A stretch of 64,000 bases of DNA from Eukaryota sp. TZLM1-RC. Its lineage: Eukaryota > Protista > Metamonada: BaSk clade. The notes beneath the pieces are model-generated. The model was not told where the DNA came from, searched no databases, and worked only from the letters and a program-made list of their open reading frames with translations. Position numbers and translations under genes: made by a program. This document shows, piece by piece, positions 12,944 through 39,686 of this stretch; the first letter of the stretch is position 1; each line of letters starts with the position of its first letter. The stretch is from NCBI GenBank assembly GCA_040285825.1, contig JAUPSS010000005.1, positions 992,001 through 1,056,000 of the forward strand, given 5' to 3'.

Positions 12944-14691
12944 CTACACTTGATTTACAATATCGTCAATTCGCAAAATCATCTTAGTGACTTGCGTAGC
13001 TAACAAAAATTGTTGTTGTTTTCCCTTTAAAGTTTCAAACACATGCTGCGTCATCATATCATTATCCCCAGTTTGATTGCAATCAATTCCGTAATGGGGT
13101 TTCCCGGTTTTAATCTGCTGAGCTCTTGCTTTTGCAACTTCCTCCAATACAGAAAGTCCAGCATTCTCGGCCAAAGCCATTGGTATAGCTTCCAATGCAT
13201 CAGCGAATGCCCTGAACGAGAACTGATCAGTATTACCAACAGTATCGGCATGCTCGTTAATCTTAAGAGCACAAGCAATTTCAGCCGAACCACCGCCATA
13301 AATGATTGATGGATCCCTAATCAAATTACGTGACACACAGATGGCATCATGTAAAGAACGTTGAGTCTCAGCAACAGCCATGTTGTTGGATCCTCTACAT
13401 AGCACAGTGACTGCCTTGGAAGAAGGGCATCCCTCAAAGAAAATGAAGCGATCTCGGGTTGTACCCAAAGAAGCTTCCCTTACAGAAGATGCAAAACCAA
13501 GTTTGCTCTCGGTAAGCTCTTCAAAGCGAGGAACTATACGGGCACCTGTGATGAGTTGTGATGTTACCAAAAATAGAAACAATACCAGTCGCGATGGCCA
13601 ATAACTCAATTTCAGGACCACCAACCCATCTCACTGCGTTGATTCCATTCTTTAATAATAAATGATTAGCCTCATCCTCAAAACCCCATTGGCAAATTAC
13701 CAAATTACAACCCACGGCTTTCAAAGAACTAATCATATCTTTAAAGAATTGTTGCTCCATCGTAGCTAACCTTTGATAGGCATCAGCATCAGTAATGTCA
13801 ATATGGTGTTTGTTTTTAGGCTTTGGTGCCTCCATTGGACATGTTAAAATGGCGATACGGACTTCTGAAAGTGATTTTGGCATTTGCGGGTGACTAAACT
13901 CTTTTTCAAGAACAATACCTGTGGTGAGTTGTCATGATACCAAAAATAGACACAATACCCTTAACCAAAGCAGAATCTTCAATTCTACCCCCAGTTTTCG
14001 TAACAACTTTGATCAAATCAAGGTTGGTATCTTTTCGTTCTAGATCAGCAACAGAGAGGACAGCATCAACAGCAATATCAGCCATTGTATCAATACTTTT
14101 GGACACAATCTTGGAAGAAAGTGTTGTCAATGCAGTTTTTTTCAAGTGTTTTTGCAAATTCTCTTCAATCTTGAGCTCATCAGCAATCTCGGTAAGGTAA
14201 GCAGAGCAGATCTGGGCGGCTTTTTCGTAACCAGCAGCAATGCGTACAGGATGCATTCCGCGATCGAGGAGTTCAAGAGCTTGTTCTAGGAGGGCGCCGG
14301 CAAAAACAACGACAGAGGTAGTACCGTCACCAATCTCAGCGTCTTGAGATCGGGACAGTTCAACCAAGAGTTTACCCACTTCATGTTCTACTTGCATCTG
14401 TTCCATGATGGTGGCACCGTCGTTGGAGATGTTGAGATCGCCATCAGGGGAAACAAGCATCTTATCGGCACCTTTAGGACCAAGAGAAGTACGAAGGGTA
14501 GATGCAACAGATATGGCTGCAAGGATGTTTTGCTAGGATGAGATGGTTGTGGGTCGTGTAAGACGTACTTTGTGGGCTTCAAGACCTGTAGCACGTTTCT
14601 TTTCTTCTTGATCCTTGACGATCACAAAAGGTCTGCCATACTCGTCAAAGACTACGGGCATTTGGGAGGGATTGCCTGCTTGTGCACTCAT
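12944..14691 (-). CDS. CCT5: T-complex protein 1 subunit epsilon; exons 14691-14569, 14532-13959, 13918-13586, 13545-12944 (543 aa)
   Basis: [62 protein letters not shown]. Removing three GT-AG introns gives one uninterrupted 1632-nt frame. Confidence 0.95.
13546..13585 (-). other. 40-nt spliceosomal intron (CCT5 intron 3), repeat-family member
   Basis: GTATTGTTTCTATTTTTGGTAACATCACAACTCATCACAG; removal restores [11 protein letters not shown]. Confidence 0.93.
13919..13958 (-). other. 40-nt spliceosomal intron (CCT5 intron 2), repeat-family member
   Basis: GTATTGTGTCTATTTTTGGTATCATGACAACTCACCACAG; removal restores [18 protein letters not shown]. Confidence 0.93.
14533..14568 (-). other. 36-nt spliceosomal intron (CCT5 intron 1)
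   Basis: GTACGTCTTACACGACCCACAACCATCTCATCCTAG; it ends in an in-frame TAG, and removal restores GLEAHK/QNILAA. Confidence 0.88.
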
Positions 14692-15169
14692 TAGATGTAT
14701 ATAAGAGGGAAAAGGTGCTGAGAAGAGAGGTACGTGTTATTTGAAGTTGAATTTGAATTTTTTGGGATCAATTCGACTTATCTAAAAGGGGAGATGAAAT
14801 CATGAAATACACAACTGAAACTCTACATCCTCAAATACTCAATTTAGATTTTTTTCACAGAACTTTTCTTTTTTTTCAATTAAATAAATAGTTGTGAGTG
14901 AAGATGCTTCACAACAAATGAATCCCAAGAGGGAGAACTTGATTGAAGTGACCTACATCTACCTCAAAAGTACTCGATTCTTCAAGAATGACATTTTGAT
15001 ACCCTTTTTTAAAGAAGGTCTGCATACAGTAACATTAACTGGAAATATAAATATATCTAACAATTGTTATCTAATATCTTTTTCTGAAATACTGCCATCA
15101 AATGAATGAAAAAATACCACCAACTCTTTAAGTGGAGTAAGATAGCTTAAATCAGTGACTTCAATATCA

Positions 15170-18125
15170 GGATGTTTGAGCACTAACTTACCACTGACTT
15201 TTGCAAAATTCCAGAAATAAATCTTAAAAGTTTTGAAAACTTGGATTATATTGTACGTCTTAGCTTGGCTAAAGAAAAAAATCCCGTTTTTCCAAACTTT
15301 TTGATTGATCTCGAGGACAGTTACTCAAGTTGCCTAATCTCCCAAATTCCCAACATTTACGGCCTTCCTCTTTTTTACGGCCTTTCTTTGATGCAGAGGA
15401 AAATAATTTTATTTTTAATCTCGACTTTAAAAATGCTTTTAATTCTGTAAAGCGAGAAGCAATTTTTAAAGTTATTAAATCTGATTTTCCTGAACTATCG
15501 AGTTTTTTATACCATTTTTATGGGAAAGAATCAGATTTAATTTTTAATTCATTTGGTCTTAAATCATCTTCTGGAGTGAAGCAGGGGGATCCTTTAGGCC
15601 CATTATTGTTTTGTTTAGCTATTCACAAAACTTTAAATATCATTAAGCAAAATTACCCTTCTATAAAAATAGTTGCTTATATGGATGATATATCCTTGAT
15701 TGGTTCATTTGATTTACTAGAATTGGTTGCTCAAGAAATTGCCGATTCATATGAAAATATTGGGCTTCATCTTAATGCCAGCAAATGTCTTCTGATTGGC
15801 TCTTCTGCTCAAGACCTCGTGATAAACGATTCTATTGTCTTTTTTTCTAATTATAGTAGTGATGCTTTTAAGTTCCTTGGTTGTTGGTTAGGAAACGTGC
15901 CTCAAATTCAGTATGAATTGCAAGTTATTTTGGAAAAAATGAAAATTGAACTTGATTCAATTTCTTCTTTAGATATAGAAAAGCATATTAAATTTTTCAT
16001 GCTTAAAATTTGCTACACTGGGAATATAACCCACATTTTTAGATCTTGTGCTCCTTCCATAGCATTAGATTTTTGTCGTTCATTTAATTCATTGAGAACA
16101 GAATTTTTTGCTGATTTATTGGATGTAGAACCAGGAATGTTGAAAAGTCACTTATTTTCTTCAGCAAATTTGGGTGGTATTGGTTACTAAATCTTCAATT
16201 TTGTGTCAATCAGCATTCTTGGGTGGTGGCAAAAATTTTATTTATGAATTTTCTCGTAGATTTCCTGATGATTCTCATCTGTTAGTTCCCAATTGCAGTC
16301 CTTATTTGTATGAGTTATCTTGTGAACTTGAAAAATTGCCGCCACAAATTTGGACCAAATGTTTTCCTCAATCAATTCAAGAAATTCCAAACCGATCTCT
16401 GTTTAATTTACAGTTTTGCTGGAAAAAGCTTCAACAAAAATTTTCAAAGATTTTTGAAAGCTTGGACTTTGATGTTAGACTTGGCTTGGCCAAGAAAATG
16501 AATCCCGCTTTTGCAAATCTTTTACAAGATATGTGTGACAGCACTTCTTCTGCCTTAGTAACAACAATTCCACAAGTTTATGGTACTCTCTTATCCGATT
16601 CTGCTTGGACTCTGAATATGAGATTTCGTTCCTTTATCTGGCCTGATAATTTACCTCATAATTTAATTTGTAAATGTTCTCGAGAAATTACAACTACTCA
16701 TTTGTTAAATTGTAAACATTTTATTACTTTTAGAAGCAAGGTTCATGATGCTGTAAGAGAACAGTTATATTGTATGTGTAAATCTCATAGAATTGAATCC
16801 TTCTTGGAACCTCTGTTGTCAAATCTGTTTGATGCTGAAGATGATTTTCATAAGAATAATAGAGGTGATGTTATATTACCTGGATTAGATGGAAGTTTCA
16901 TTTTATTGGATGTAATGTCTGTTGATCCTTGTAATGCCTCAAATGTAAGGCTAGTTAATTCTGAAATTCATAATCCCCTTTCAAATGCTGAAAATTTTAA
17001 ATTCAAAAAATACAATGAACCTTTGTCCAAATTGGCCAGTCTACAGCATGCAAAATACAATTTGTATCCATTTGTATTTTCCCTTTTTGGTTCACTTTCA
17101 ACAACTGCTTTACGTTTTTTGGATGATTTTGAAATGATTGTAAAGAGAAGAACTGGGAGAAATTTCAACAGATTGTTTTGGCAAAATAGAATTGTATTTT
17201 CTATTTTTAAGGGGATGTTGAAGATGGCTTCTGATGCTTTGCTTTCTCTTGGATCTCACTATGAGAGAGTTGCATCTAGTGTTTTTCTTCTGGGAGAGAT
17301 GGATTTTTGATGTTGATTCATAGGTTTTGAATAAAATTAAAATTAATTAAAAAAATTTATGGCCTTCTACTTAATGATCACCAATGAACCATTGCAATGA
17401 CAATGAGATGATTTTTATGGCCTTGTTCGTTATCAAATGATTTAATTTGTCGCTGCAAGAGTGTAATTACGCTTTCCCATATTTTAAACTGCAAATATTT
17501 TATAACTTATCGTTCAATTGTTATTGGCTTAGTTCGTGATCAATTATATGCCATGTGCAAAAGTTCCAATATAGAGGCATTTATAGAACCATTGGTACGT
17601 AAGCTCTCTCTAGATCAAATTGACAATTCTTTTGGTAAAAGAAGGGCAGGTTTAGTAGCTCCAGGGATTTATGGTGTTCTCAACGTTGTGGATGTTGTTT
17701 CAGTAAATGTCTGCAGGTATTTTGCTGCTCCCTTGGTGTATTCCGCTGATCCGCTGCTATCTTACTCCGAAAAAAAAGTAAAAAAATATGAAGAACCATT
17801 GGCACAATTGAGTAGAGTCAAATATGTGAATTATCAGTTTGTACCGTTTGCAATTTCTTTTATTGGCATTATTGGATTTCCAGGATTACACTTTTTTGAA
17901 AATTTTAGGAAATTATTGCAAAATAGATCTCGTAAAAAATTGAATTACACTTTCTGGTTAAATAGAATTGTTTTATGTATTTTCATGTCTATTCCAACAA
18001 TAATTTCTAAAGCTCTTTTAGCTATTGGTATAGAATATGAACGAAAGGCTGTGAGTAGATTTAGTAATAGTGATGCTTGTTTGGAGGATATTGAACATTA
18101 GACAGTATTTTATATCAACAAAAAT
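15170..18125 (+). mobile_element. Older CRE-like non-LTR fragment (~15170-15367 and 17355-~18125) split by a younger relative
   Basis: QIPNIYGL on the left continues as YGLLLNDHQ...CRC..HILNC...VRDQLYAMCK and an RLE-like region on the right. Confidence 0.75.
15368..17354 (+). mobile_element. 5'-truncated CRE-like non-LTR retrotransposon (RT + zinc finger + restriction-like endonuclease), ~13-bp TSD
   Basis: LDFKNAFN, GVKQGDPLGPLLF, YMDD, FLG, CKC..HLLNC..HD, RGD...D...K. One frameshift near 16185. A-rich 3' end. ATTTAYGGCCTTC at 15355-15367 and 17355-17367. Confidence 0.9.
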
Positions 18126-18172
18126 ACTTGAAAAATGAATTCACTTGTGAAGTAGGTAATTGTTTGCACATT

Positions 18173-19751
18173 TGTTGCCGCCCTAAGGCTTTTATAATAT
18201 GAATTGAAAACAGATCAGACTTCTCTTTACTACAATAGACTTTAGGCAGAAATAATTATTGGCCATTTCAAAGTGAAAAGGTATACCAAAACTCCAGCAC
18301 TTTACTAGTAAACATCCCCAAAAACCTTTACAGCATGTCAGACATCTTTCAGCAAGATATCTCTAACCCCAATTCCTCACCTAACATGCAGCAACAGGAA
18401 GCAGCGACACACACACATATACATAACAAAGAGGGTAACGAGGTAACGGACCCGGGTCCCACCTCCCTAAAAGTGAAAGATGAAAGCGTGGACGAGGTCC
18501 CTCCATCTTCAGCAATGGAAAGGGTAACGAGAACGGACCCGGCTCTCTCTCCCCTCCCAATTGTAGAACCTGTCTCAAAGGGAACGGATGGAAATTCCAC
18601 CTTAGACACGGCTTCCCCATTAGGAGAATATGAAAAAATTCAATCTCAACTAGATGAAATGGAGGGAGGAGACGACTCTTCCGAGGGGTTCTACAAGTTA
18701 TTGAAAGAGGATGCGGAAGCTTACCTCGAACCAACAGATTTCTGTCTGTTCGAGCAGCTTCCTCCTCTGTGGAGTTACATTCATAACAGAGACAGAAACG
18801 AGGGTAATTTTTAATACCTTTTGGGGATACCCAGAAGGAATTAAAAATTACCCTCAATGAAAGGAATGAACTCATAAAGGCTCTTGATAAATTGAGCAGA
18901 GAGACGTTCGGGCGTAACGCAGAGCGCCGTCCCTGAATCTCTGGTATGGACAAGAGAATCAACGAAATGATGTGCCTTCCCATCAAGGATAGACTGGATT
19001 CGAAGGCCTCCTTCCTAGACCAACATGGCAGGAGAATAAGGTTTCTCTCCATCGAGCAGAGAAGTAGGACCGACTCAGAAGACATCCTACAATTCAAATT
19101 GCCTGCCTGGTTTGATCCTATCTGTGATACGGAAATTCATAACTACACGGAGCTGACAGAGGGTGCTCCCACATATTTTAGGGAACTCATGGAGCAGGAG
19201 AATAATAGTGAACAAGACAAGCTTGAAATAGCAATAACCTGGTTCGATGCAGACGCTCTGAATAAGATTCATAGGGAACAATCAGCCGTATCCACGTATA
19301 GGAACTGTCCTAACAACTACATTTAACAACATGGTAACTCGTTCACGAAACAACGAGAGTTTAAACAATGGGTAACAGGAGATCCATCCACATTTTTCCA
19401 CCTTCCCCAATTGCCTGTTGTAGCTCCTATAATTTCTGAAAAAGCCAACCAATACAGGTCTGCTATATCGAAAGCATACCCGAACACGTTCCAACAGTGA
19501 ACGTCCCGGAACCTGTAACAAGAGAAGACTCAGCACCTCAGGAAGAACCAACTTCCTCCCAACCCATGGAAAGTGAAATTGCAGAAGACATAGAGTTACA
19601 CGGTGCAGTCGTTGGAAAAAACGGCTCCTTCTCAACCCTCAGTAAGAAACTCTTCTTCCGATAGACCTATGCGTATTGAGGACCTACAATCCTCAAGGAG
19701 AGCTATTGGCATGAGCATAGTTAGTAGCCTTCATAGACAGATTGATCCACG
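18173..19751 (+). mobile_element. LTR element B2: 5' LTR 18173-18251 + degraded gag, broken at 19751
   Basis: Colinear with B1 3265-4885. The terminal CA is mutated to AA, so the palindrome reads AAATAATTATTG (18250-18261). Confidence 0.9.
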
Positions 19752-20649
19752 TTCAGGGGTTCAGGGCGTATTCCACTTAAGAATCTTCTTGCTAGGGCTT
19801 CATCATTCTGGAGGGAAGGTACTTTGCGAGCTACCTTCATAAAATCTCGGGTGTATCGGGTAATAGCTTCATCGGCATCACGGCAATTCAGGGGCAAGGA
19901 TACACGGTTAAACATCTGGTACGCTTTAGCGGTATCTTCAACGGGCGTACAGGACAATAGGTATTTCAGGATCTTCTTAGGCTTCTTTGGAGAGATCTGG
20001 TGGATAACAAAAAAAGTATCCAAAACTTCTGGGGCAATACATCTAAGAATGTAAGGTAATAACAGGGATTTGAGGTCATCAGGGTCTTGGGCTCCTACAA
20101 GACGTAACAGGTCGGGTTTCTCTTCATCAGAAACATCAGAGTTATCAGAGTACAAGAGAGGAACTTCTTCATCTTCTTCCTCTTGGTCATCAGAGCTATC
20201 TTCAGCCAAGGCATCATGGAGATTGAAACAAATCTCTTCAGGGTTGACTTCTTCTTCAGCTGGTTCAGCTGGTTCAGGGGCGGAATTTCGGGAACTTCTT
20301 CTAGAGTTCTGGTAATTAGTGAGAGCGGGTTCAGGTCTCATCAAGAACATACGGACGGCAAAGACTCGCAACTCGTCGACGAAGCGTGTGCAAGAGCAGC
20401 GGTCAGCACTTCGGAGAATTGGGGCAACTCGGCCAGAATTACTCATTGGGGCCTCAGTAATTACTGTGGGGTTTGCATGCATCAGTTTCCTTGTACAAAC
20501 GGGTAACAAACAGAAACAGGGGTTTATCACAAGGAATAGGAATAATCAGAAAGAAGAATTCCTCTCTGCAGATAAACTTGTGATGACGTGTCATCACGTG
20601 ATACTGTAACTTATAAATAACTATAAACTACATTGGCTATGAGCCTACA
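19752..20649 (-). mobile_element. LTR element family D, copy D1: putative 5' LTR 20465-20649 + 5' part of gag (ATG 20482)
   Basis: Starts TGTAGGCTCATAGCC and is homologous to 63660-64000. Capsid-like ORF (AITRYTRDF...LARRFLSGIRP). Inserted in a B-type integrase. Confidence 0.8.
20455..20466. other. 12-nt palindrome CAGTAATTACTG at the inferred 5' LTR end (D1)
   Basis: Read directly; same distance (185 bp) from the TG start as in D2. No 3' LTR is available to confirm the boundary. Confidence 0.8.
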
Positions 20650-21873
20650 TTTTAGTAGAATTTATTATCAGTTGGGATGTAAATACATTTGTAAATAGTA
20701 GACCAATTTCCGTAATCAATAAAATCTATTAATAGTTTCTTTAAGCATTGGAGAACGTCTCTATGTTTACGTTCTACAAGTCCATTACTTTTTGAATAGT
20801 AGGGAATTGAGTTACTCATCTCAATCGCTGATCTATTATACTATTATGAAAGTCTCAGTGGCGAACTCAGGTCCATTATCGCTATGAATTAACAAAGGTA
20901 TGCCAAAAATTGCACAAACGTTTCAAATCAAAGCATCTGCGGTTTCTAAAGCATGGAGTTCTTTTAGAGGGACTAAAATTGTATATCCAGTATAAGAGTC
21001 TACAAATACTAATAAATATTTATTTCCTTCGTTGTCAGTGTTCAGAGGTCCAATTGTATCGACGTTGAATCTGGCAAATGAACGATCTGCCCATAAGAAT
21101 TTTGTGGAAGGTGTTTTTGACCTTTTAACTAAAGCCGTTTTTTGAAAAGTTGGGCAACTTTTGACATGATTTATGAGGCCCTTTCTCATATTAGGCCAGT
21201 AGAAGTCACTTTTGGTTAGTTAATGTAAACTATCGTTTTTGCTGGGGTAACCAGATTGAACTAAAACATGTATTAATAATAGTGCCTGTTTTCTGAGGCT
21301 CTTTGGAATGAAAATTATATTTTTATTACTTTTCCAAATTTGAGTCTTTTCTACTAGAATTGCATTTTCAAATAAAGAGTCATTGTTGTTTTTGGCAATT
21401 TATTGTTCGGATCTTATTTTAGAGAGCCAAGAAGAAAAAATGGGCAAGTCTTTGGTGTCTACTTAAAGATGAAATTGATGGAATATCTTCAAAGTCCGAA
21501 TCAGAAACATCGCCTAGTGGAGGTATCTCGTAATTCGAAAGTAAAGTATCTGGTATATTTATACTACAAATAGAAGGAGTTTCCTCCTTTTGATCCAAAT
21601 CAAAATTCCTCGATAGCATACCTTTTCAATGGTTTTTTTCACCCGGTTCATGGACTGCATCAAAGTCAAATTCAGATAGTATCGGCAGCCATCTCTACAA
21701 TTTTATTTTTCTCTGGGGCTGTGGCCAGGAAGGCAATGTTTTGTGATCAGTGAAAGTTGTTAAATGTCTAGTCAAAAGGGAGCTTTCTGAACAACTTTCA
21801 GTTAAAATCAAGAGTATTGCATATAGTTCTTTCTGTAAAGTGGACCATTTTCTTTGTGTTTCTGTAAGTAACC
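20650..21873 (-). mobile_element. Inverted RNase H-integrase fragment of family B
   Basis: Its reverse complement is colinear with B1 ~7140-8358. Confidence 0.9.
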
Positions 21874-22595
21874 TGATCTAAGGCACGCTCAGCAAGTGGC
21901 ATAAGTCTTGTACGACCTGGAGATCAAGTTTTAAGGGACTGACAAAAGCCTGCAACTTTTTCAAACAATATAGTTCTTTGAACTTCCTCAAAACAGTTTC
22001 TCTCAGCATCAAGTTGTTCACGTGATAATTTGTGCGACAGCATCTCCAAAGTTTTCATCTTCGTCATCACTTTCGGGTTGATTGAGAGAATTAAAAAATC
22101 GAGATAAATTGGTAGGTATAATAGTAAAAGAAGCCTCACGCTTCTCCACAAGAGAGGTTCAGTATTTCCAAATGGTAATGGGGCCGATACACCTGCGTTG
22201 AGCTCCTTCAAGTCTTCAACTGGCATTTTGACAACCTCTTGTACCTACTCTTGCTTCCACATTTTGTAAGTCTCCTTCTCCACATCAATGGGGTTGACCT
22301 TGATTGTACAAGCTACACCCTCTTCGCTGTGCGCAGAAATCCATCCAGCTATCGTGGAGTTTTACTCCTGGACGGAACTGGCTGCCGGTTGACTTGTATT
22401 TGACTTCAAATTGCCAGTCACTGTTAAACTTCTTTTTCTTTGCAGACAATTGGGAGCGGAAAAATTGATGAGCAGCTTCCTGAAGTTCTACTGCGGTACA
22501 GCAGTTGTCCTATTAAAGAGATATTTCCTGTTGAAAGAAGGCACGGGCACCTTTGTACAGTTGTAGCATCAGTTGTACCTTGATGGAGGATGCAT
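21874..22595 (-). pseudogene. Degraded coding-like fragment of unknown identity
   Basis: Coding-like composition, ATG at ~22595, stops and frameshifts, no recognisable motif. Confidence 0.3.
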
Positions 22596-28400: not shown

Positions 28401-28787
28401 TTCATCGAAGATCTGTTCGGCGACTTTCTGCTTCTCGGGGTTTAACCTACGAGGGGGTCGTCTGACTCGAATACTTTCATCATGAAAGTTGATCTCCATT
28501 GGAGGACAGTCAATCCCATCAGCATGCGGCTTAAGGGTGAATGTCTCTTCGAACTCTTTCAAGGTTAGAAGTAAGGTCTTCTTGTCGTTATCACAGTCGA
28601 GGTTTATAGTACAACCAGAAGACTGAATGTGCTCCAACCAACGTCTAGGGACGTTGACGACATCTGAGACTTGGGAGATTCGATGGTCGAATTCAGCCTC
28701 AGGCAGAAGTAATGTACGATGTTCCTCATCCATCTTGATGAAGAGACCTTCATCGTTCAATAGGCCTAGGTGACTATAATCATGGTC
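25485..28787 (-). CDS. pol of C (RT, RNase H, integrase, chromodomain-like); protease catalytic part missing; frame runs into the 3' LTR
   Basis: Open 1091-aa frame: LDLPKAFWQ, YIDD, SCDASD, GHPS..CPSC, DVIGP, SDNGPEF, VERRH, VIQKVL..CQVQW. No D-S/T-G protease motif. Confidence 0.9.
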   Translation of the reverse strand, partial: DHDYSHLGLLNDEGLFIKMDEEHRTLLLPEAEFDHRISQVSDVVNVPRRWLEHIQSSGCTINLDCDNDKKTLLLTLKEFEETFTLKPHADGIDCPPMEINFHDESIRVRRPPRRLNPEKQKVAEQIFDELVESGFALPSNHEFSSPVCLVVYPDHRKPRLTGDYSGKDGVNANTVPVEPNLPRISDVLVFLSEANFIGTLDLPKAFWQLKIAEKDWEKTALSIPGKSIMFKRAAFGLKNVPAVFQNVMADIFSGDGVFIYIDDIIIVGRTFNEFLGRLRRVLEKARTRRVSLGLPKCHFVSSRHPIKILGSRFQHKTRTIDPTRTESLLNLPRPKTVKDARSLIGSVNFIREWLPQVTKHVAPIIKLTHGKPRRLQWKDTHDYHLAEIKRLIAEHMPLNLPPVDNQVLISCDASDIAVGGVIWEQIEPTKDPGTPLLNKKCRPISFFSRLLTNSQQNWPTVQKELYAILLMLTESGFENYLKGRRLIIFTDHQNLTYMLTAPNKNRIVRRWLPIFSEFLFDIVHTKGEENHWADMLSRIVPPQDNHTINHLVHSNDQEFHPIYYTNRIDETESERCFVEDLHTFEKVLILQDKCSNDLPLFEPWLCKIRSEQKRALANQDTSFNNCTLDSRLDLYLTPEHKIVIPQSLVKDTLNLLHGLPQGGHPSKAESLLRLKNSDYWWPNMLSDMTKHVQECPSCQKTAAVPKLHVPTTGSLWADRPFARVNVDVIGPLPEDQDGHRYILVFVDSFTRFTIIVPLKELNANLTADALIWKVCAIFGIPFIVHSDNGPEFSKAVFDALCEFLGIEVSKSVPHFSQSNGLVERRHRDILQNLRKLLVDFNAYDAWSEYTPYVQLLINSSKSSITGYSPYELMFGSDFSPRADPGKIIETLESSTSESTYINNIQSKFARLKKKQEEAELRQASKAPPRDSQIEANPFSPGQLVKRASSSTAKLHGNYKGPFLVIDTPSTSTADIKNLCTGMVVKASVKHLQPWHSSLPVDDEFHSWVAAGDAEEHVIQKVLSQDGDYCQVQWPGNHITTELVSTVQNTSAYKEFSKSVSNTRSRPSRRKRRSDNINNNVNPTPIRPRRSKRRKGSVSLG

Positions 28788-31457
28788 TCACAAGGCACGG
28801 TCGCTTGCCCTGACGTCAGAAATGGCGGTACTTCGTAAAACTGTTCTCATTAGCCTCACAGTGAAGTCGCCCCAGCGATTCCTAAAGTCCTGAATATTCC
28901 AATTCATCTGAACTCTATATAACTGATTCCTCGCCGTTTCTAAAGTACTATACTGGCTGAGGTGTAAAATTGATTCCCATATTTGCTCCTCATTAATGTT
29001 GTCGATAGCTGAGATACTATCAGACATAGACGAAAACCTGCCTTGAGCTCTCAGAGCGGCCAAGCACTCTGGAGTAACACAGGAGGCAATCCTACGAGGG
29101 TCGACTTGAGCAGCAGCTCTGAATCGGTCCCACTCGTGGAGGGGGTTACCATATCTCTGATCAAGAGGGAGGTTCCGGTTTTCTCTGCTTATGGATTGAG
29201 GAGTGGCAGGAGGACGAGAACGTTCCTCAAGTTGCCTTCTTAGTTCAGACACTTCTCTTGCTAGTCTGACTTGAGTAGGATCAGATTCATTGATGTCTCT
29301 CTCTTCAATGGTCCTCTCAGTCCTAGCATACAGAATAAATCTGTCGATGAATTTCAAGATCCTTACTGGGTCAGAGATATCGTTGGCTTCCAGGGTGGGT
29401 TTTCTGGGTCGACCACCTCTTTGTCTATCTCTATCTCTATCTTGTGAACTCGCCATAGCTTCCATCAGTAGGGTGTTGGAATACTGGGGAGCTATGGGAG
29501 TGTTAGAAGGAGTTACTCCTGGGACCCTAGGGTCTTGAGGAACCTGGGAAGGAGTTGATGGATCCTGAGATTGGACAACTACAGGTTGTTGCACTGACTC
29601 AACAGTGTCAGTAGTTGCCATTGGCTCATCTTGTTGTTGGTCATCTTGAGGCTCAATGCTCAAAGATGAGAAGACTGTGTCTGTCTCAACTGGGTCAGGC
29701 TCAGAAGTTCTCAATTCTACCGGGTCATGATCGCTCGGATAGTAACTTTGCACATTACCATCGACATTGACCCACAGAAGAGAACTAGAATTGGTGACAC
29801 CAATGTACTCCTGTACATTCATCAGGGCGTCCCTTAGTGGCCTATTCCTTCTATGCTCCGGACCAAAATATGACGCGCAATGGTCTGGTCTGCGGTCTTG
29901 AAGGTACAATCTTTGGTAGTTCGTAGTGTAAGTGTACCACCATCCAGTCCTGAAGTCTCTATTGATATAAATGTCAAGAGAGGCATTGTATCCAGGGCTA
30001 AACCTGGGGAAAGGACATGGGTTACATCGGTTGAGGAAGAGATTCAGCTCATCACCAGCGAAGATCCTCTGTACACCTTCACGAGGAGTTCTGAACCCTC
30101 CAACAGTATCCCGTTGAGGATAATTTGGAGGAGGGTCACAACGAACCGTAAGATTGTCTACTTCCTCCGTTGGGAAGTAGGGACCTATTCTTCTGCGGAT
30201 CCTAAAGCCGTGATCATTAACCACTTCTGGACCCCAAAATGGGGGTAAAGCAGCAATGAGTTCATTGGGAGGAATCGATGCAGGATCTCCTAACATTAAC
30301 TCAATACCAGCATTGAGAACTAAGTTTTGAGCTTCAGTTCTCTGTTGGGTAGAGATGAAAGGAGAATCTGATTCCTGGGGTTGGCTTGGGGCTTGATAGG
30401 TGTTAGGCTGTGCAGCACTAAGCACCTGCCAAGCAGCAGGAACAGAAGAAACAACGTGACCTTGCTGAGGAGTCTGGCCAGAGGTTGGAGGGACATGAAT
30501 TACTCCTCTAGTAGGAACTCCCGAAGGAGGAACAGATGGAGTTGAATGGACTTCTGTAGGAGCTACCGTAGTAGGAGCAGAAGTATCAGGAAGGCCTGCT
30601 ACAGGAACTTCTTGAGAAGGAGTAGTAGGATTTGGGCTACCAGCAGGGACTGTAGGAGGAGCTGGTTGTTGCGGAGGGCTGCTTTCCATAGGAACTTCCC
30701 TAGAAGGAATGGAAGGAGCTTGTTGTCCTTCCCCAGGAGCTTCCGTAGAAGAAGTAGAAGGAGCTTGTTGTCCTTCCCCAGGAGCTTCCGTAGAAGAAGT
30801 AGAAGGAACTTGTTGTCCTTCCCCAGGAGCTTCCGTAGAAGAAGTGGAAGGGGCAACAGGAGCGCAAACAATAGGTGAAGAGGGAGGCTCTACTCTCTTG
30901 AGCTTCAACAGCTCAGATATCTTGTTGCTGGCTGAGTCAGGGTCAGTCTGGTTGATGATATACTTCAGATATTCATCTAAAGTACTGAACTGTTCAGGAC
31001 CTAAAAGGGAATCTTCAACCTCTCCTTCAGAACCAGGGGGAGGAGAAAGAGGTATAAAGTTTTCCACATTAGCGGGAGGAACAGGAAGACTGATAGGAAC
31101 CACAGGAACGTCATCCGTAGATGGAGTGGAACCTTGACCCGAGGGTTGAGAGGAAGTGTCACTTCTCTCGCCACCAGAGGGTTGTTCTGTTCCCAACTGA
31201 GGAGTTTGCGAGGAAGAACTTGAAACATTGGGTTGTGTAACAGAATCTCCGGAGGGAGGAGTTAACACAGGAGGAGGAGAAGCATTGCTTCCCTCGGACC
31301 CAGTTGTCAAGGGTTGTTCTGGTCCCGACTGAGGAGTTCGGGAGGAAGAACTCGAAGGGTGAGACGTAGGAGGATCAGTCCTAACAGTCTCGGAGTTGTC
31401 ATTGGAACCACCCAAACGTGATCCAATACGTATTGATGATCTGTGGGGGTTAGACAT
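28788..31457 (-). CDS. Gag-like protein of C (889 aa, Pro/Ser-rich; ATG inside the 5' LTR; C-terminus truncated)
   Basis: Long ORF from the LTR to the pol junction, with a capsid-like helical C-terminal region. Confidence 0.8.
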   Translation of the reverse strand: MSNPHRSSIRIGSRLGGSNDNSETVRTDPPTSHPSSSSSRTPQSGPEQPLTTGSEGSNASPPPVLTPPSGDSVTQPNVSSSSSQTPQLGTEQPSGGERSDTSSQPSGQGSTPSTDDVPVVPISLPVPPANVENFIPLSPPPGSEGEVEDSLLGPEQFSTLDEYLKYIINQTDPDSASNKISELLKLKRVEPPSSPIVCAPVAPSTSSTEAPGEGQQVPSTSSTEAPGEGQQAPSTSSTEAPGEGQQAPSIPSREVPMESSPPQQPAPPTVPAGSPNPTTPSQEVPVAGLPDTSAPTTVAPTEVHSTPSVPPSGVPTRGVIHVPPTSGQTPQQGHVVSSVPAAWQVLSAAQPNTYQAPSQPQESDSPFISTQQRTEAQNLVLNAGIELMLGDPASIPPNELIAALPPFWGPEVVNDHGFRIRRRIGPYFPTEEVDNLTVRCDPPPNYPQRDTVGGFRTPREGVQRIFAGDELNLFLNRCNPCPFPRFSPGYNASLDIYINRDFRTGWWYTYTTNYQRLYLQDRRPDHCASYFGPEHRRNRPLRDALMNVQEYIGVTNSSSLLWVNVDGNVQSYYPSDHDPVELRTSEPDPVETDTVFSSLSIEPQDDQQQDEPMATTDTVESVQQPVVVQSQDPSTPSQVPQDPRVPGVTPSNTPIAPQYSNTLLMEAMASSQDRDRDRQRGGRPRKPTLEANDISDPVRILKFIDRFILYARTERTIEERDINESDPTQVRLAREVSELRRQLEERSRPPATPQSISRENRNLPLDQRYGNPLHEWDRFRAAAQVDPRRIASCVTPECLAALRAQGRFSSMSDSISAIDNINEEQIWESILHLSQYSTLETARNQLYRVQMNWNIQDFRNRWGDFTVRLMRTVLRSTAISDVRASDRAL
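30712..30850. repeat. 3 x 45-bp in-frame tandem repeat in gag of C (STEAPGEGQQxPSTS)
   Basis: Unit GAAGGAGCTTGTTGTCCTTCCCCAGGAGCTTCCGTAGAAGAAGTA is repeated. Confidence 0.9.
31424..31435. other. 12-nt palindrome CAATACGTATTG at the 5' LTR end / PBS position (C)
   Basis: Read directly; the boundary is fixed by the second LTR and the TSD. Confidence 0.95.
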
Positions 31458-32316
31458 TGAGTATACCTTAAATGTAATTTATTACAAGGGAATGAGGATT
31501 TCCCTTGACTTAAGCGCATGGGCGCAATAATACAATAACTATTAATAAACTATAAATAAACTATTATAAATATTATCCAAGGCTAACACTTTGCGCCATT
31601 CTCTGAACTGCTCTAAATTGATAACTTATCGTTCTTCATAACATGATGCTGTTAGAGACACTATTGCACAAACTGCAAGAATATCGTGTATCAAAGAGCC
31701 CCTGCTGAAGGAAACACTTTCTCTGAAAAATTTGGGTTCTGATGATGAGGTGATGTATACTGTGATTGGATTGATAATTCTGAAGCTATTGTTGACTTTG
31801 TCTCATGTAATGTTGCAAATGATACTTTGGTTCACAGAAGAAAACTTAATCCTGTGACTGCCCTTGATTTTAAAGCAAAAGAGAAACATAGAAAATATGA
31901 TAAAAATATTGAAGAGGCTAATGCCGATAGAAATACACAGCTGGTTTTTATTGCTTTCCCATTTTCGATAAATGGAAGATTATCAGATGAAGCAGAAACT
32001 TTTTTGAATGACTTCCAATAAATGGTGCAAGAAAAGACAATGAAAAGATTTGATATATTTTTATGGCGTTCACGGATTCAATTTACCATTATTAATAGAT
32101 TACCACGGTTTTTCAATCGAATAAGAGAAGCTTTAGCTAGACAGCAAGCAGATCAAGAGTTTGCAGAGGAAATTTTGGTCCAATGATAGTCGTCCCATTA
32201 GTTATGAGTTAATTTAATTGAGGGTGCAAATTCAATAAATGAAATCACAGAACCTCTAGGAAAAACACCTGGGACATTGATTACTACTGCTTCCTTACAT
32301 CAGCTGATATTATCTC

Positions 32317-34167
32317 ATGTCCTCCGTTAATGACATAATCAGTTTCTACTTAGACCTCCTCCCTAAAGCACATACCCTCTACATTTGCCCCACTTTTGAA
32401 GAAGTAATTAAATGGCATGGAGGTTATCCCAAACTCCTTGCACTTGGTTTTACATCTCTTCTCCCGCTCTCTCATCTACTCTCCAATCAAAACTCCAATC
32501 AAAACACGTGTACCATCATCACAGACTCTATCACCACATCCCTACTCTCCTTCACCTCTACCTCTTCCACTCCAGCTCGACATCTTGTGTCCCTAATACC
32601 AGAGTTTGTATTAGAATACCTCCCCAACCCTAATCCTAACCCAATTTCTTTTTCACAGCTCTCCCCCTCTTTTACTTCAATAACTTATCTCCCTCTGGTT
32701 TATTGCTCCCCTTTTCCCAACACCATAGTGCTATCAAGACCTAATGCATACTCATTGTCATTATACGAAGGAAGCCGCGATGGGGAAGTTTCAAAGGTGT
32801 TATTTGCAATTGATTTGATTGGTTTTATGCTATCAATAGGAGCAAGTAGGCAATCAATCATAATCAACTGTCTAGGATCAGTTTCCCAGTCAATAACGAA
32901 GAGAATAGTTGATTTTGTTCATTTATTTCCAGAATTTCCTCAGATTAAATCAAATATTTTGAATTTAAACTTGTTTTTAACAGAGCGTGGAATTGATTGT
33001 GCGTCTGTCATCACATCATCAATCAAAAAAGATGGAAAATCGAATTTGTTGAGTGATTTATACAATACTTGCCATTTTGGGTCATTCAATGACGTGATGA
33101 TTGGTTGTGATTCACCTTTTAACCCTTTGGTTGATGAGGGTCAACCTTTGATTAGCTCCTTAATCAGTGATTTAAATCCAACATTGAAGGATGATCTCTT
33201 TTCGTCAACTGACATTGACACGTGCAAAGAGCTCATCCAATCATTTTTGATTGATACTTTTGAGCTTGACGAATCAACACTACTATCTGAAATATTAACA
33301 GCAAAAGCTGGCGAAACTTCTAAATTATCAAAATTTGAATTTTCTCTCCTACGGTTGGGGTTGGCTTTGGAAAACTCTACAGTTAAGTCTACAGTCCAGT
33401 CTACAGTCGTGAAAATAATTTCTAAATATTTCACTTCTGGAAATTTAATAAAGAATTCTTGGATGGAACAGGTTAAAATTATTTTAAACGACAAGGAATT
33501 CAGTCATAACACGTCATCAAATTTGATTGAAATCATCTGGATTTTATGTTTACTCTGTGTTACCAGATCGGTTCCTGTCAGCAGTCAGTCAATTTCACCA
33601 ATCAAATCATATTTGATTGATTACATTATCAACTGGGTGGTCAAATCTCCAAATCCAAGTATAAATTTCTTTAATTCAGACATTAACAATGCGTTGCTTG
33701 AGTTATTCAATAATCGTAATGATTCTTCTTCAGAACATTTTATCAATGCATTTAATAAATGTAGGCTATTATTGGATGATGAGCTTTATAGAATATTGAT
33801 TAATTTAAATGCTATTTCGCAAATTAAGCTTGATTTGTCTTTTATTACATACCCATCTCGTGGATTTTTTAATTTTTTGTCTCATCAATTCATCAATAAT
33901 CAATTAAGTTGCGAAAAGTTTACCACTCATAAACAATTAGAAAATTTGATTAGTTCAGCGTTTTCTTTCATGAGAGGTCAGAAGTCACGTGGTCGATCAC
34001 GTGATGTTGGTCAGAAGTTGATTGATTCTCACTCTGTTTGTATGTTTGGAGGTGCTAGTTTTAACGAAATTTTGAATATTTCTAGTGAATTAAAAGGTGG
34101 ATTTTTCATTTGTTCAAGAATAACAAATACTGAAGAAATGATTAAAGATTTGATTGTAAATAAATAA
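32317..34167 (+). CDS. Divergent Sec1/Munc18-family protein (SCFD2/MIP3-like)
   Basis: Intact 616-aa ORF. LFLTERGID and the C-terminal VCMFGGASFNEI...FICSRITN resemble Sec1 domain motifs. Confidence 0.55.
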   Translation: MSSVNDIISFYLDLLPKAHTLYICPTFEEVIKWHGGYPKLLALGFTSLLPLSHLLSNQNSNQNTCTIITDSITTSLLSFTSTSSTPARHLVSLIPEFVLEYLPNPNPNPISFSQLSPSFTSITYLPLVYCSPFPNTIVLSRPNAYSLSLYEGSRDGEVSKVLFAIDLIGFMLSIGASRQSIIINCLGSVSQSITKRIVDFVHLFPEFPQIKSNILNLNLFLTERGIDCASVITSSIKKDGKSNLLSDLYNTCHFGSFNDVMIGCDSPFNPLVDEGQPLISSLISDLNPTLKDDLFSSTDIDTCKELIQSFLIDTFELDESTLLSEILTAKAGETSKLSKFEFSLLRLGLALENSTVKSTVQSTVVKIISKYFTSGNLIKNSWMEQVKIILNDKEFSHNTSSNLIEIIWILCLLCVTRSVPVSSQSISPIKSYLIDYIINWVVKSPNPSINFFNSDINNALLELFNNRNDSSSEHFINAFNKCRLLLDDELYRILINLNAISQIKLDLSFITYPSRGFFNFLSHQFINNQLSCEKFTTHKQLENLISSAFSFMRGQKSRGRSRDVGQKLIDSHSVCMFGGASFNEILNISSELKGGFFICSRITNTEEMIKDLIVNK

Positions 34168-34499
34168 TTCCCAATTTGTGGTTATCTTGCTAAAACAAGT
34201 CTGATCTTGTATACCAAACCGGTTTCTTTGAACATAAGCGAACCAACATCACAACAACACCTGAAAAAATGTCCGCCATAATTATTATTTTGTTTTTTAA
34301 ACTATCAATAATGAGTCTCTATTCTAAGAACCCAATTGCATTTAATTAATTAATCTAAATTTAATTCAAAAAATCCAATTTTTTTTGCTACACTACAGAC
34401 AGATAAAAAAGTCTGAAACTACTCCATCTCTTCAGAAGAAAAAGTCTTTCTTTTGGCAGCTCATGAACAAATGCTATAAAGACATTTTGTTCTCGTATA

Positions 34500-35100
34500 G
34501 AATTAAAAGTTTAAATCAAAAGTAGCCCATCAGTGATAAAGAATCAGTTCAGTGGTCGTTATTTATTTTGCAAAAACGTTGAGCGGCAGCGGGAGCTCCT
34601 AACTCCATTGACAATCAGCATTATCATTATAGTTAATGTAAGTAGCAATTAAAGCAAGAACATTCACTGAACAAGATTAGCCATTATAATTGGATTTATT
34701 GAATCAATTGAATACTAGGTATATATGTTGTTGTACAGATATTTTCCGAAAGGTCAAAATATTCAACACTGCCTGTGAGCCTCAAATTCCATTTCATTTA
34801 CATCCAAATCAAGGTCAACTCAGCAGCTTTTTAGTTCCTCCAAAACACCCACGGTGTTCGGTCTTCGTATGATCCTTCAAATACACTTTCTCATTTCCAA
34901 GATTATTGGTTTCAACATCCCCAGTAAATGATGCAAGAGCGAATGATAATTGAGAAAGTGGTATTCCTTTTCTTTAGAGGGGTACCGATTTCTAAGCAAT
35001 AAGCGTTAATCATTTCAAGCAGTTGTTCACGAACAATAAACCGTTGACTTGTTGCAAGGCCGAATCTCTTCAAGTCCGTATTGTTTATGGAAATGGCCAT
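34500..35100 (-). mobile_element. Degraded N-terminal (FAR1-like) part of a MULE transposase
   Basis: SQRFIVREQLLEMINAY...G..LKKR pattern; frameshifted. Confidence 0.35.
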
Positions 35101-36709
35101 ACTGTTATCTCAGTAGTAAAATGTACAGTGACCCGATTCTGCAATATTCTCCACTATTTTTAACTGAGGCATGAGTTGTGGTACACTTCTTGGATGGGGT
35201 GAGTTTTCTTCTACTTCTGGTGGGAATTCCCTAGAAATTTCAGGACTAAGGACAACGTCATATAGTTCTTCTAGGGAATTATATTATTATATATATTGTA
35301 CAACGTAGTGTATCCTTTTTAAATATTCTGCTCCAACGTATGACTCAGAACAACTATCAACAACTGTTGCACTAACTTAACAAATGACAGAGTCAAGCTG
35401 CTTTGTTGCTACTACACGCTGGACATTAGCCAATCTGTTAAAATCGTAAGTTGGGAATTTACCAGTCTGAAGAGGACCGCTAATGAGATTATGGTCGCAC
35501 TTATAACAACAATGACCAGTATAGGTTCAAATATCTATGTTTCAAATGGATGAGCGTGTATTATGATGTTACCAATCATAATTAATTATACCTATTAATG
35601 GTAAAATGACCAACATGCCAGATTAGTGCGATTCTGCTTGATGGAATGGGGAGAAAAACGCAGATTACACGACTTGTGTACATGCCACGTCATCACTCGT
35701 CATCACTGCCACGTGTCCTTGTTTTGGTGTCTGGACTAGCGTCTTTCTACTTAATGATTGTTGAAAGTGTTTTAGCTTGATGTTTGGATTCAAGACGTTG
35801 GCTGGCCAAAGGAAACAATCTCTCTTTATAGGAGTGAATCTCGACAACATAAAATTAAAAAAAAATTATTTGTGTAAATATCAGCGGTCTTCATTGTATT
35901 CATTTCAATTTTGTATTCATTGTATTCATTTTTTTGTTTTCATTTTTGATTTTCATTTCATTTGTATTGGAGTACATTTCAAGTCTTTGCACAATGTGCA
36001 GCAGTTAGCATTCTGCACTAATACACCTTCATTTACAAACGTTCATTTCTCTTATTATTTCAAACACACAAGACCCAATTCTGCAATGGTCACTGTAGAT
36101 GTAGGGTTATTTTGTAAGATAATATATTTTTATACTTGTACATCAACCTTCTTTTGGAGTCACAATGGCGCAAAACCGAAAATTAAAATGAATCCATAAA
36201 TTTCTACTTTTTAACAAATACATTGTAAAAAGAATATTTTCAGAAAAACTATCACCAATTTGGTGCTTTCGATAATTTGTCCTCATTCTCATCATGTTCC
36301 GTTTACCTTGTTTTTTTGCTTATTCACATAATCTTAAATAGTTTTGAATCTTATAATGTCTTAGGAAACAGAATTACAAGAATATATGGTCTTGGCACTG
36401 ATTCTCTCCTTGTTCAAAGAAAGTTGGAGCCATTGCTGATCTTTAGGTAGATTATATTAATTCTTGGTCCATTGACTTTAGGGCAAACAGCAGAAGAATG
36501 TTGTGACAACATCCGTGAACAACAGTGAGTTAATGACTTTCAGCTTTGTAATATATAACTTGTATATATGATTTCCATATTTACACGGCGATTATGTAAT
36601 CTACTTTCTTATCGGTTTCAAGTTCTTCTTTTCTAGCTTTAAGGGAAACACATATATATCAGGTTTCAATGATAGTCAACACAAAAAAGTATAACTTTAG
36701 ATAAATCCA

Positions 36710-37005
36710 AACAGAATTTTTTGCTGATTTATTAGATGTTGGCAACATGCTGAAAAATCAGTTATTTTCGGCAGCAAATTTGGGTGGTATTGGATTTACA
36801 AAATCTTCTATTTTCTGTCAATTAGCATTTTTTGGTGGATGCAAGATTTTTATTTATGAATTTTCTCATTTGTTAGTTCCCAGTTACAGTCTATATTTGA
36901 ATGAGTTATCTTGTAAACTCAATAGATTGTCACCACAAATTTGGACCAAATGTTTTCCCCAATCAATTCAAAAAATTACAAACCGATCTCTCGATAATTT
37001 GCAGT
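36710..37005 (+). mobile_element. Internal fragment of a CRE-like non-LTR element
   Basis: Colinear with 16097-16413 (FSAANLGGIG...QIWTKCFPQSIQ). Confidence 0.85.
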
Positions 37006-38017
37006 AATAGGGTGTTTAGAGTAAATAAATCACAAAATCATAAAGTTTATCATAACATAACTATATCTTAATCGATGACATTAGTTGAGTATTACACAGA
37101 AAATCGTAACTTGCCCCAAGAGCAACAGCTTTGATGGATGTATCACAATAAAGGAAATCAAACACCAAATGTCATAACTTAGTTTTAGCTAAATTCTGCT
37201 TTTCATAAATCTCTTCGATTCAGATTTTACCAACAAAAGACCATTATTAATCTCAATGCCAGATCAATAGAAAATTCCGGTGAATGATTGACAGCAATCA
37301 GAGGTAATCAGAGGTGATGATCTTGACATATTGTTTAAAGTCCTCCATTTTCACAAATATTTCATTGTTAAAAAAGTCTCAAACAAGAGGCCAGGATAAG
37401 AAGACGATCTTGTGTGTGGTTCATTTGTTTCGAACCAACATCGACATCTTTGTAGAAGCAAATGTAAATTTAGAAGCACAAAGCTTAGATACAAAGACAA
37501 AAACCATTTATTCTAACATCAACACTGAGATGAGTCTATTAAAAAACAAGAGGTATCAGCCAAAAAATCGGTAGCTGGAGTTCTAATCATACGAGACAAG
37601 ACAGCACAGAATGTACCGCAGGTCAAAGTAAGACAAATGCCAGACGTCATCAGACGATACAAGTAAGAAGTTTAACACTAGGGTTATCAAACGAAAAGAA
37701 AAGGTTCAGTGGTAGCCGAATTCACATTCATAAAGCTCGACATAACGCCGAGACTTCATGACACACAGATCTTGCGCAAGAAACGTGCGGCTCGAAACAG
37801 AGCTCCGAGCATCAATCTCGTCACACAGTCTTCATCAGAAGAACTGATACCAGAGGCTTAACATACTACCTGACATATGCACATGTTGAGGGAGGTGGGA
37901 AAAATGACCTGTATTTGTTGCAAATCAATTCTCTTCCAAAGAATTGTTTCAGCTGTTGATTCAATTGTGGTAACGTGATTTGGAAATCTCAACAAAAACA
38001 GGAATGATTCAAATTCA

Positions 38018-39686
38018 ATGTCTCGTTCTGCCAAGACCTTTGGAAAATCAGAAGGCTCCATCCCCGATCTTCCTGGGGATGTTGTTGACGGTAAAGTAGT
38101 TACACGCTTCCCTCCTGAACCCTCTGGTTTTCTTCACATCGGCCACGTCAAGGCTGCTCTACTTAACAACTATTACGCCCGTCACTATGGAGGAAAACTC
38201 CTTCTGAGATTCGATGACACCAACCCCTCCAAGGAGAAGGGCGATTACGTTACTTCCATCACTGAAGATCTTCATCGTCTTGGCATTGTCCCCGACAGCA
38301 TCTCCCACACTTCTGACTATTTCCCTCTCTTCATTGAAAAATGTGAAGAACTTCTCCGTTTGGGCGATGCTTTTGTTGATGACACCCCAGTAGACCTCAT
38401 GCGCCAACAACGTGGTAACCGTCAGCCCTCTGAACGTCGTGAAAACACCGTCGAACGCAATTTCGAACTCTGGGAAGAAATGAAGAAAGGGACCCCCAAA
38501 GGTTTAGAATGTTGCGTGCGAGCCAAGATTGACCCAACCTCCCAAAATGGAACTCTCCGTGACCCTGTTATCTACCGCTGTAATGTGGAACCCCATATCA
38601 GAACTGGTACTCAGTATAAGGTATTGTTTCTATTTTTAGTAACATGACAGCTCATCACAGGTTTACCCAACTTATGATTTTGTTTGTCCTATTATTGATT
38701 CAATTGAAGGAGTAACACATGCTCTGAGGACTAACGAATACAGAGAACGCAATGTCCAATACGACTGGTTTTTAAACAAATTTAATCTTCGAAAAGTTCA
38801 CATCCACGATTTTGGTAGGTTAAACTTTGAATATTCAGTCATGTCAAAGCGATTACTTTCAAAATTCGTTGATAAGGGCATTGTTGATGGATGGAATGAT
38901 CCACGTTTTCCCACTGTGCAAGGTGTTTTTCGCAGAGGGCTAACTTTAAAAGCATTATCTGATTTTATTCTGCTTCAAGGTAGTTCTGATGCTTTAATTC
39001 AAATGGAATGGGATAAGATTTGGGCCATGAATAAGCAAGTGCTCGAACCCGTTGCACCCCGGTATAACGCAGTAATTGATCCCATTGTAGTTGAATTAGT
39101 AGGGGAGGGAGCTTGTGATAGTGTTGATTGGAGAGAAATGCCACTTGTACCAAAGGATGCTGCTCTCGGTACTAAAATGGTTCCTTATTTCAATAGGGTT
39201 TTGGTATCTAAGGAGGATGTTCAAGATGTAGCTATTGGTGATAAAGTTACTCTTATGGGTTGGGGTAATGCTTTTGTTGAGAATGTTGTAAGTGAAAACG
39301 GTGTAGTTGAAGGAATAACTATGAGATTAGCACTAGATGATAAAGTTTTCAAAAAGACTTGGAAGATTCAATGGGTAGCTGATGTACCTGATGTTATACG
39401 TTTTGATGCTGCTTACTTTGGTTATTTAGTAAATGTTAAAAAAGTTGAGGCCCACCATGAGTTTGACCAAATTGCTAATCCTAATTCTAAAAAAACTTTG
39501 TCTTATGTTGGTGAGCCCGCTATGAAGACTCTCAGCCATTCTCAACATTTGCAATTGCAACGTTTGGGGTTCTTTATTGTGGACCAAGCTCCTGTCATTG
39601 AATCTGGATTGAAATTGATATATGTACCTTCAGGAAAAGGAACACTTACTTTAGAGGACATCTTTAAAAAGAAGAAAAAGAAATAG
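38018..39686 (+). CDS. EARS: Cytosolic-type glutamyl-tRNA synthetase; exons 38018-38620, 38661-39686 (542 aa)
   Basis: RFPPEPSGFLHIGH, RFDDTNP, YK/VYPTYDF, THALRTNEY, MSKR, GWNDPRFPTV, QLQRLGFF. Confidence 0.93.
38621..38660 (+). other. 40-nt spliceosomal intron of GluRS, same repeat family as CCT5 introns 2 and 3
   Basis: GTATTGTTTCTATTTTTAGTAACATGACAGCTCATCACAG; removal restores YKVYPTYDF. Confidence 0.93.

Follow-up and report, generated by a model that had tools for sequence, protein, structure and literature searches.

The window, a stretch of 64,000 nucleotides (nt) that protein searches assign to Skoliomonas litria TZLM1-RC, contig JAUPSS010000005.1, contains three nearly identical 40-nt introns, two in the gene for CCT5 (T-complex protein 1 epsilon) and one in the gene for glutamyl-tRNA synthetase (GluRS). 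Both sequenced sister species lack all three at the orthologous sites, and recent copying of CCT5 intron 3 into the codon for Gly233 of the same gene and into GluRS is in our view the best explanation of them, and probably the right one. The comparisons below show lineage-specific introns of common descent, with empty sites, relative ages and a free interior, and from these we infer the route of copying. S. litria is a culturable soda-lake flagellate, a free-living metamonad with a 31.9-Mb genome of which 55% is repeats (PMC11316075).

Three 40-nt introns in two unrelated genes

The two genes lie on opposite strands of the window, and the features on which the argument depends are as follows.

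12944-14691, minus strand: CCT5, window copy (W), four exons, 543 amino acids
14691-14569, minus strand: CCT5 exon 1
14533-14568, minus strand: CCT5 intron 1, 36 nt, phase 0
14532-13959, minus strand: CCT5 exon 2
13919-13958, minus strand: CCT5 intron 2, 40 nt, phase 1 in Gly233 (G|GT), three mismatches to the family consensus
13918-13586, minus strand: CCT5 exon 3
13546-13585, minus strand: CCT5 intron 3, 40 nt, phase 1 in Gly344 (G|GT), one mismatch and so the nearest to the consensus
13545-12944, minus strand: CCT5 exon 4
38018-39686, plus strand: GluRS, two exons (38018-38620, 38661-39686), 542 amino acids
38621-38660, plus strand: GluRS intron, the only one of the gene, 40 nt, phase 0 between Lys201 and Val202, two mismatches to the consensus

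The 40-nt consensus has exactly these three matches in the window at three or fewer mismatches, and none in 100 dinucleotide-preserving shuffles of it. CCT5 intron 3 agrees with intron 2 at 36 of 40 positions and with the GluRS intron at 37, and the remaining pair agrees at 35, giving pairwise identities of 88-93%. Each of the six variable positions differs in a single copy, so that the three form a star around the consensus, and CCT5 intron 3 is the probable donor. Unrelated introns of S. litria match the family with a mean identity of 56% and a maximum of 74%. All three copies run from GT to AG, and the flanks of the three insertion sites are mutually unrelated coding sequence, the similarity stopping at the splice sites. 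What is specific to the family is the 5′ 30 nt, where the GTATTGT donor is unusual; CTCAYCACAG at the 3′ end is the general branch and 3′ splice-site signal of the S. litria genome, with the branch A at −7, and other S. litria introns have only this 3′ CTCAY-NNN-AG with its A at −7 in common with the family. The original prediction, made from the letters alone, had described three near-identical 40-nt introns, and this stands, with 35-37 of 40 positions identical, no matches in shuffled sequence and exons that run colinear with homologues after excision of the introns. Its G|GT context and phases of 1, 1 and 0 are likewise borne out at Gly233, Gly344 and Lys201|Val202, and CCT5 intron 1, which it took to be unrelated except at the 3′ end, has in common with the family only the 3′ CTCATCNNAG.

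The gene models were examined exon by exon, with GluRS exon 2 searched alone and the CCT5 exons aligned as separate rows beside the scaffold P0121 (alignment A1); the joined coding sequence was used only to count differences from the CCT5 paralogue described below. The CCT5 exon translations adjoin on the full-length CCT5 homologue without gap or overlap, and at each phase-1 junction exactly one residue is missing from the exon alignment, this being the split GGT glycine codon. The GluRS junction, YK|VYPTYDF, aligns perfectly with distant GluRS. The deposited CCT5 model covers the same span, with 543 amino acids and 116 nt of introns, and the deposited GluRS protein P0001 (542 amino acids) is the same model as ours, with a 40-nt shift at residue 201. 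Deposited models of S. litria were trained on mapped RNA-sequencing reads (PMC11316075). Taken together with homologue colinearity, the gene models identify the three 40-nt sequences as what appear to be ordinary spliceosomal mini-introns. Low-coverage 151-nt DNA contigs from three runs of one sample included none that crossed the family introns. As a separate observation, the G+C content at third codon positions (GC3) falls from 5′ to 3′ along both GluRS and CCT5; in GluRS it is 0.40-0.50 in exon 1 and 0.20-0.37 in exon 2, with the break near the intron.

Empty sites, relative ages and the free interior

To place the introns in time we compared the two genes with those of the sister species Skoliomonas sp. 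GEM-RC1 (GluRS at locus L001) and TZLM3-RCL (GluRS at L002). Where S. litria GluRS has its intron, the coding sequence of both species runs on without a break (TACAAG|GTCTAT in GEM-RC1, TATAAA|GTGTAC in TZLM3-RCL). The sister CCT5 genes (L005, L006) have one intron only, at the position of S. litria intron 1, and no interruption at Gly233 or Gly344. The absence of the three introns from the sisters is in keeping with the recent spread that the original prediction had supposed. The intron 1 site is occupied in the S. litria paralogue and in both sister species, and intron 1, whose interior cannot be aligned between species, is ancestral and serves as an internal control. CCT5 protein identities of 82% between S. 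litria and GEM-RC1, 76% between S. litria and TZLM3-RCL and 74% between GEM-RC1 and TZLM3-RCL fit S. litria and GEM-RC1 as nearest relatives, so that by parsimony one gain per site is preferred to two losses. The deposited GEM-RC1 GluRS model itself excises a 47-nt ‘intron’ after residue 10 (L001 10032-10078) which, in another frame, encodes IPELVDAIQGQVVTRF; this matches the N-termini of the S. litria and TZLM3-RCL enzymes, and the annotated start or intron of that model is therefore probably wrong.

A second CCT5 gene of S. litria, here called B, lies on contig JAUPSS010000007.1 (locus L004) and has 93.4% nucleotide identity to W. Its intron 1 is 36 nt long and identical to W intron 1 at 28 of 36 positions, and at the site of intron 2 it is exactly empty (GGTTAAG GGC ATT GTT). 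The remaining site is occupied:

L004 11067-11102: B intron 3, 36 nt, at the same site as W intron 3

This intron keeps the family ends, GTATTGTTTC and GACAACTCATCACAG, around a middle that is different and shorter by 4 nt. Only 7 of 543 residues differ between W and B, scattered over both lineages, although 21% of 4-fold sites differ, which indicates that both genes are under purifying selection. The similarity of W (12943-14692) to B (L004 10000-11705) begins one base before the ATG and ends one base past the stop codon, the flanks cannot be aligned, and 4-fold divergence is uneven, at 0.28 over the first ~900 coding bases and 0.12 afterwards. Similarity bounded by the start and stop codons, together with uneven divergence, implies that gene conversion has acted. 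We considered retroposition as the origin of B and rejected it, as B has no poly(A) tract and keeps introns 1 and 3. Contigs of run X2 that are ~92% identical to window positions 13952-14095 and 14178-14328, with the differences at third codon positions, end 7 bases into intron 2; they do not represent a second strain, since they fit the intron-less site of paralogue B.

The second gene also gives the copies a relative age. Both paralogous pairs of introns, W intron 1 with B intron 1 and W intron 3 with B intron 3, are 78% identical, and B intron 3 is identical to each of the three 40-nt copies at 31 of 40 positions. With 88-93% identity among themselves, the copies would therefore be younger than the gene duplication. 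The tree of copies reads (B intron 3, (W intron 3, W intron 2, GluRS intron)) on these alignments. Intron 3 would then predate the last common sequence of W and B, and intron 2 and the GluRS intron would derive later from a W-type intron 3, which agrees with the empty site 2 in B.

That the interior of these introns is free to vary follows from four observations, namely the changed middle of B intron 3, the unrelated interiors of other introns, a hairpin that is not conserved and the lack of an Rfam match. The twelve other S. litria introns taken from deposited gene spans are 26-44 nt long, with GTAYG or GTTTG donors and unrelated interiors, and most have the branch A at the −7 spacing. The hairpin is weak in two copies (−4.9 and −6.2 kcal/mol, z about −2.1) and is destroyed in intron 2 by two non-compensating changes (z +0.87), and on these grounds a conserved hairpin was rejected; an 8-base-pair palindrome in the family is internal and likewise not conserved. 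An Rfam search found only two transfer RNAs, with no small nuclear RNA and no family matching the introns. The original prediction had offered, as an alternative to mobility, an intron class constrained over its whole length by a divergent spliceosome. This no longer holds, as the interiors of other introns are unrelated and B intron 3 has kept its ends and changed its middle.

Two further gene models bear on intron form in this genome. The deposited 530-amino-acid model of the gene at 15681-17310 needs a 37-nt intron starting GTATTGG (window 16177-16213, plus strand), and the GTATTG donor is thus not unique to the 40-nt family. This gene has no Pfam hits and belongs to a repeat family, with a 96%-identical copy at L004 15409-17373 and weaker copies at window 41419-42983 and 36710-37005. 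At L013 7662-9715 (minus strand; from 7.3 kb left of the window to window position ~2430), a deposited 675-amino-acid model needs a 26-nt intron, GTTAGGGATCGCGATGGACCCACCAG, whose 5′ end holds one telomere-like unit (GTTAGGG).

Copy number, copying route and alternative explanations

Four copies of the family are known, including the 36-nt B intron 3. All lie inside coding exons and in the sense of the host gene, and those in the window are clustered, two being 333 nt apart in CCT5 and one 25 kb away in GluRS. The S. litria sequence surveyed comes to 157 kb (the window, L004, L007-L009 and L013), of which 71 kb was selected independently of the intron family; L007-L009 are three loci taken at random via a retrotransposon protein cluster. 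No further copy, genic or intergenic, was found on either strand of the 157 kb at 12 or fewer mismatches, none was found in 86 kb of the sister genomes, and none of the 12 other annotated introns resembles the family. The ends of the three 40-nt copies were read for terminal inverted repeats and have none, as the original prediction had noted. Its term ‘miniature introner family’ stands in part: the introns are lineage-specific, of common descent and at non-homologous sites, and a dispersed, multiplying element is not shown by the 157 kb surveyed.

A metagenome scan with the 22-base core of the family gave a single match, in L003, where CTATTTTTAG(T/A)AACA is repeated upstream of TATA boxes, as it also is in the relative L012. 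We set L003 aside as an unrelated promoter-like motif, although a chance origin of the match is not fully certain. The motif is of the CTA(W)4TAG type and occurs two to three times between genes, upstream of TATA-like boxes (L003 900-1565, minus strand; L012 4300-4455, plus strand, and 1770-1794 and 2752-2767, minus strand), one copy matching the S. litria intron over 25 bases. Both loci carry a YqaJ-exonuclease gene, L012 additionally having RING, integrase and chromodomain genes; no Skoliomonas kin of either was found, and searches of IMG/VR and of 596 Gb of prokaryotic genomes gave no match to the pattern. It is probably a promoter element of some eukaryotic mobile element or virus.

The insertion site of CCT5 intron 2 is marked by a direct repeat of 8 nt, with its first copy at 13952-13959 and its second as follows:

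13912-13919, minus strand: direct repeat GGTATTGT, second copy, the last base of intron 2 and the first 7 bases of exon 3

Exon 3 opens with 8 bases (GTATTGTT) that repeat the 5′ end of intron 2, and measured against the family consensus the target match reaches 9 nt (GGTATTGTT). The exon part of the repeat is native coding sequence, its Gly-Ile-Val codons being conserved in the sisters, and we calculate the chance of such a repeat at ~1 in 4,000 to 1 in 65,000. The flanking repeat is overall GGT, AGGT or GGTATTGT; the repeats of 3-4 nt at the other two sites are those of the ordinary G|GT...AG|GT context and therefore carry little weight. The original prediction saw at most a GT duplication, which is too low for intron 2, whose target matches the 5′ end of the intron over 8-9 nt.

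On the account that we propose, CCT5 acquired an intron at Gly344 within the S. litria lineage before W and B last shared sequence, and the 40-nt form of this intron would later have been copied as an exact unit bounded by G|GT...AG|GT. The recipients would be Gly233 of CCT5, 333 nt upstream, and GluRS, 25 kb away on the opposite strand, each copy lying in the sense of its host. By one route, the excised intron would be inserted into a transcript by reverse splicing, and reverse transcription and recombination would follow; the S. litria genome is full of active long terminal repeat (LTR) retrotransposons, which could provide the reverse transcriptase. By the other, a DNA polymerase (replicative or repair), or a reverse transcriptase copying pre-mRNA, would switch template in two steps: the nascent strand would leave the target at a short stretch of microhomology (GGTATTGTT for intron 2 and GGT for GluRS), copy the donor intron through CACAG-GT and return at GGT or AGGT. 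On paper this two-step switch would reproduce all three products exactly. Reverse splicing agrees with an exact intron unit, with insertion at G|GT, with copies that are all genic and sense, and with the abundance of retroelements, but does not explain the long match at intron 2, and the 8-9-nt match at that target favours template switching. We decide for neither route. A cut-and-paste DNA element is unlikely, because there are no terminal inverted repeats, the repeat length is variable and no intergenic copies were found in the 157 kb surveyed.

Several points weigh against recent local copying from intron 3. The relative dating is based on short sequences, gene conversion between W and B blurs it and could have moved intron 3 between the paralogues, and the empty site 2 in B could alternatively reflect a precise loss. 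With three events, clustering and sense bias are no more than suggestive. About 0.5% of the genome was surveyed, 71 kb of it independently, and an unbiased sample of this size is compatible with a dispersed family that numbers up to about a thousand and has its master copy elsewhere. Splicing is predicted from DNA and gene models, and any reverse-spliced or lariat intermediates are hypothetical.

The survey bears most directly on the idea that the three introns are members of a large dispersed introner family, in which a self-propagating mini-element with its master copy elsewhere would move as a 37-nt unit that duplicates its GGT target. We regard this as unlikely. Near-identical introns in unrelated genes, all flanked by GGT...GGT and gained in one lineage, are what it would predict, and the survey is a weak test of it, since 0 copies in 71 kb still allows ~1,300 genome-wide (95% upper bound); nevertheless, the 157 kb searched held no further copies, whether intergenic or antisense, none of the 12 other annotated introns resembles the family, and terminal inverted repeats are lacking. 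A related proposal, that this is the smallest known self-propagating intron, a ~40-nt unit still spreading by reverse splicing or template switching with CCT5 and GluRS as a fresh local burst and other micro-families arising by the same process, is doubtful, though not to be dismissed; if true, it would offer a culturable protist in which intron gain can be watched.

Two other explanations would remove intron gain altogether. Old introns might have been kept only in S. litria and made similar by gene conversion or by selection on the whole sequence, for a spliceosome requirement, a hairpin or an embedded RNA. Introns are often lost in intron-poor lineages, and two of the copies can fold into the weak hairpin described above, but for each of the three sites the scheme requires two precise losses, independent of one another. 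It must also accommodate a paralogous intron 3 with a changed middle and 4 nt lost, the loss of the hairpin in intron 2, the unrelated interiors of the 26-44-nt introns, the absence of an Rfam match, and a donor and branch site outside the U12-type consensus, and we consider it most improbable. The U12-type consensus combines RTATCCTT at the 5′ end with TCCTTAAC as the branch site, 10-15 nt before the 3′ end; the 5′ end GTATTGTTTC, the branch-like CTCAT with its A at −7 and the lack of TCCTTAAC led us to reject this intron class for the family. That the sequences are not introns, being annotation artefacts or insertions in dying genes, is scarcely credible. The case is read from genomic DNA and predicted genes, which leaves some room for this explanation, but each 40-nt insertion would shift the frame if retained, GluRS is single-copy and essential, CCT5-W and its paralogue differ in no more than 7 of 543 residues against 21% of 4-fold sites, the exons adjoin on homologues to the residue, and the deposited models were trained on transcripts.

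Comparison with known systems

The origin of new spliceosomal introns is a long-standing open question, and intron-poor metamonads are usually regarded as intron losers. The case described here suggests that they still gain introns. It brings together donor, recipients and two kinds of empty site (paralogue and sister species) in one small, sequenced and culturable organism, and the introns are short enough for the entire gain event to be followed at single-base level. At intron 2 the 8-9-nt microhomology is a concrete and testable clue, pointing to template switching over classical reverse splicing.

Introners of Micromonas, Aureococcus and fungi occur in hundreds to thousands of copies and exceed regular introns in length; terminal inverted repeats with target-site duplications, or stable structures, are found in many of them (PMC4540971, PMC3609843). 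The S. litria introns resemble them in being similar introns in unrelated genes, co-linear with transcription and recently gained in one lineage. They differ in having four known copies in the surveyed sequence, no terminal inverted repeat, no conserved structure and a length only slightly above the local norm, and with 0 further copies in 157 kb a genome-wide burst of introners is not shown. Intron gain by double-strand-break repair or template switching leaves short direct repeats flanking the intron, here 8-9 nt at CCT5 intron 2 and 3-4 nt, no more than the ordinary splice-site context, elsewhere; unlike gain by break repair, the filler in S. litria is a faithful copy of a working intron, not random or telomeric DNA.

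Among metamonads, the Rpl7a and Rpl30 introns of Spironucleus vortens are ~70% identical over 63 nt, at ancient positions and with no gain claimed (PMC6679479). In both organisms introns of unrelated genes share sequence between the splice-site motifs, but the identity in S. litria is far higher, at 88-93%, and the copies are dated by presence and absence. In their short uniform length, and in the CTCAYCACAG with its A at −7, the S. litria introns also resemble other metamonad mini-introns in which the branch point is fused to the acceptor.

The closest comparison is with intron transposition or duplication, as described from Oikopleura dioica and Mycosphaerella/Zymoseptoria and tabulated by Yenerall and Zhou in 2012; that review counted only 14 unambiguous transposition events, none of them demonstrated in vivo (PMC3443670). 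As in those cases, there is full-length homology to an intron of the same genome, a non-homologous site, absence in close relatives and a small number of copies. Unlike them, the S. litria unit is only 40 nt long and belongs to an intron-poor metamonad in which the branch point is fused to the acceptor, one recipient is in the same gene as the donor, at a distance of 333 nt, a paralogue retains the empty site, and one target matches the 5′ end of the donor over 8-9 nt. We therefore regard the S. litria introns as a new and unusually clean instance of this rare class and, to our knowledge, as its smallest unit.

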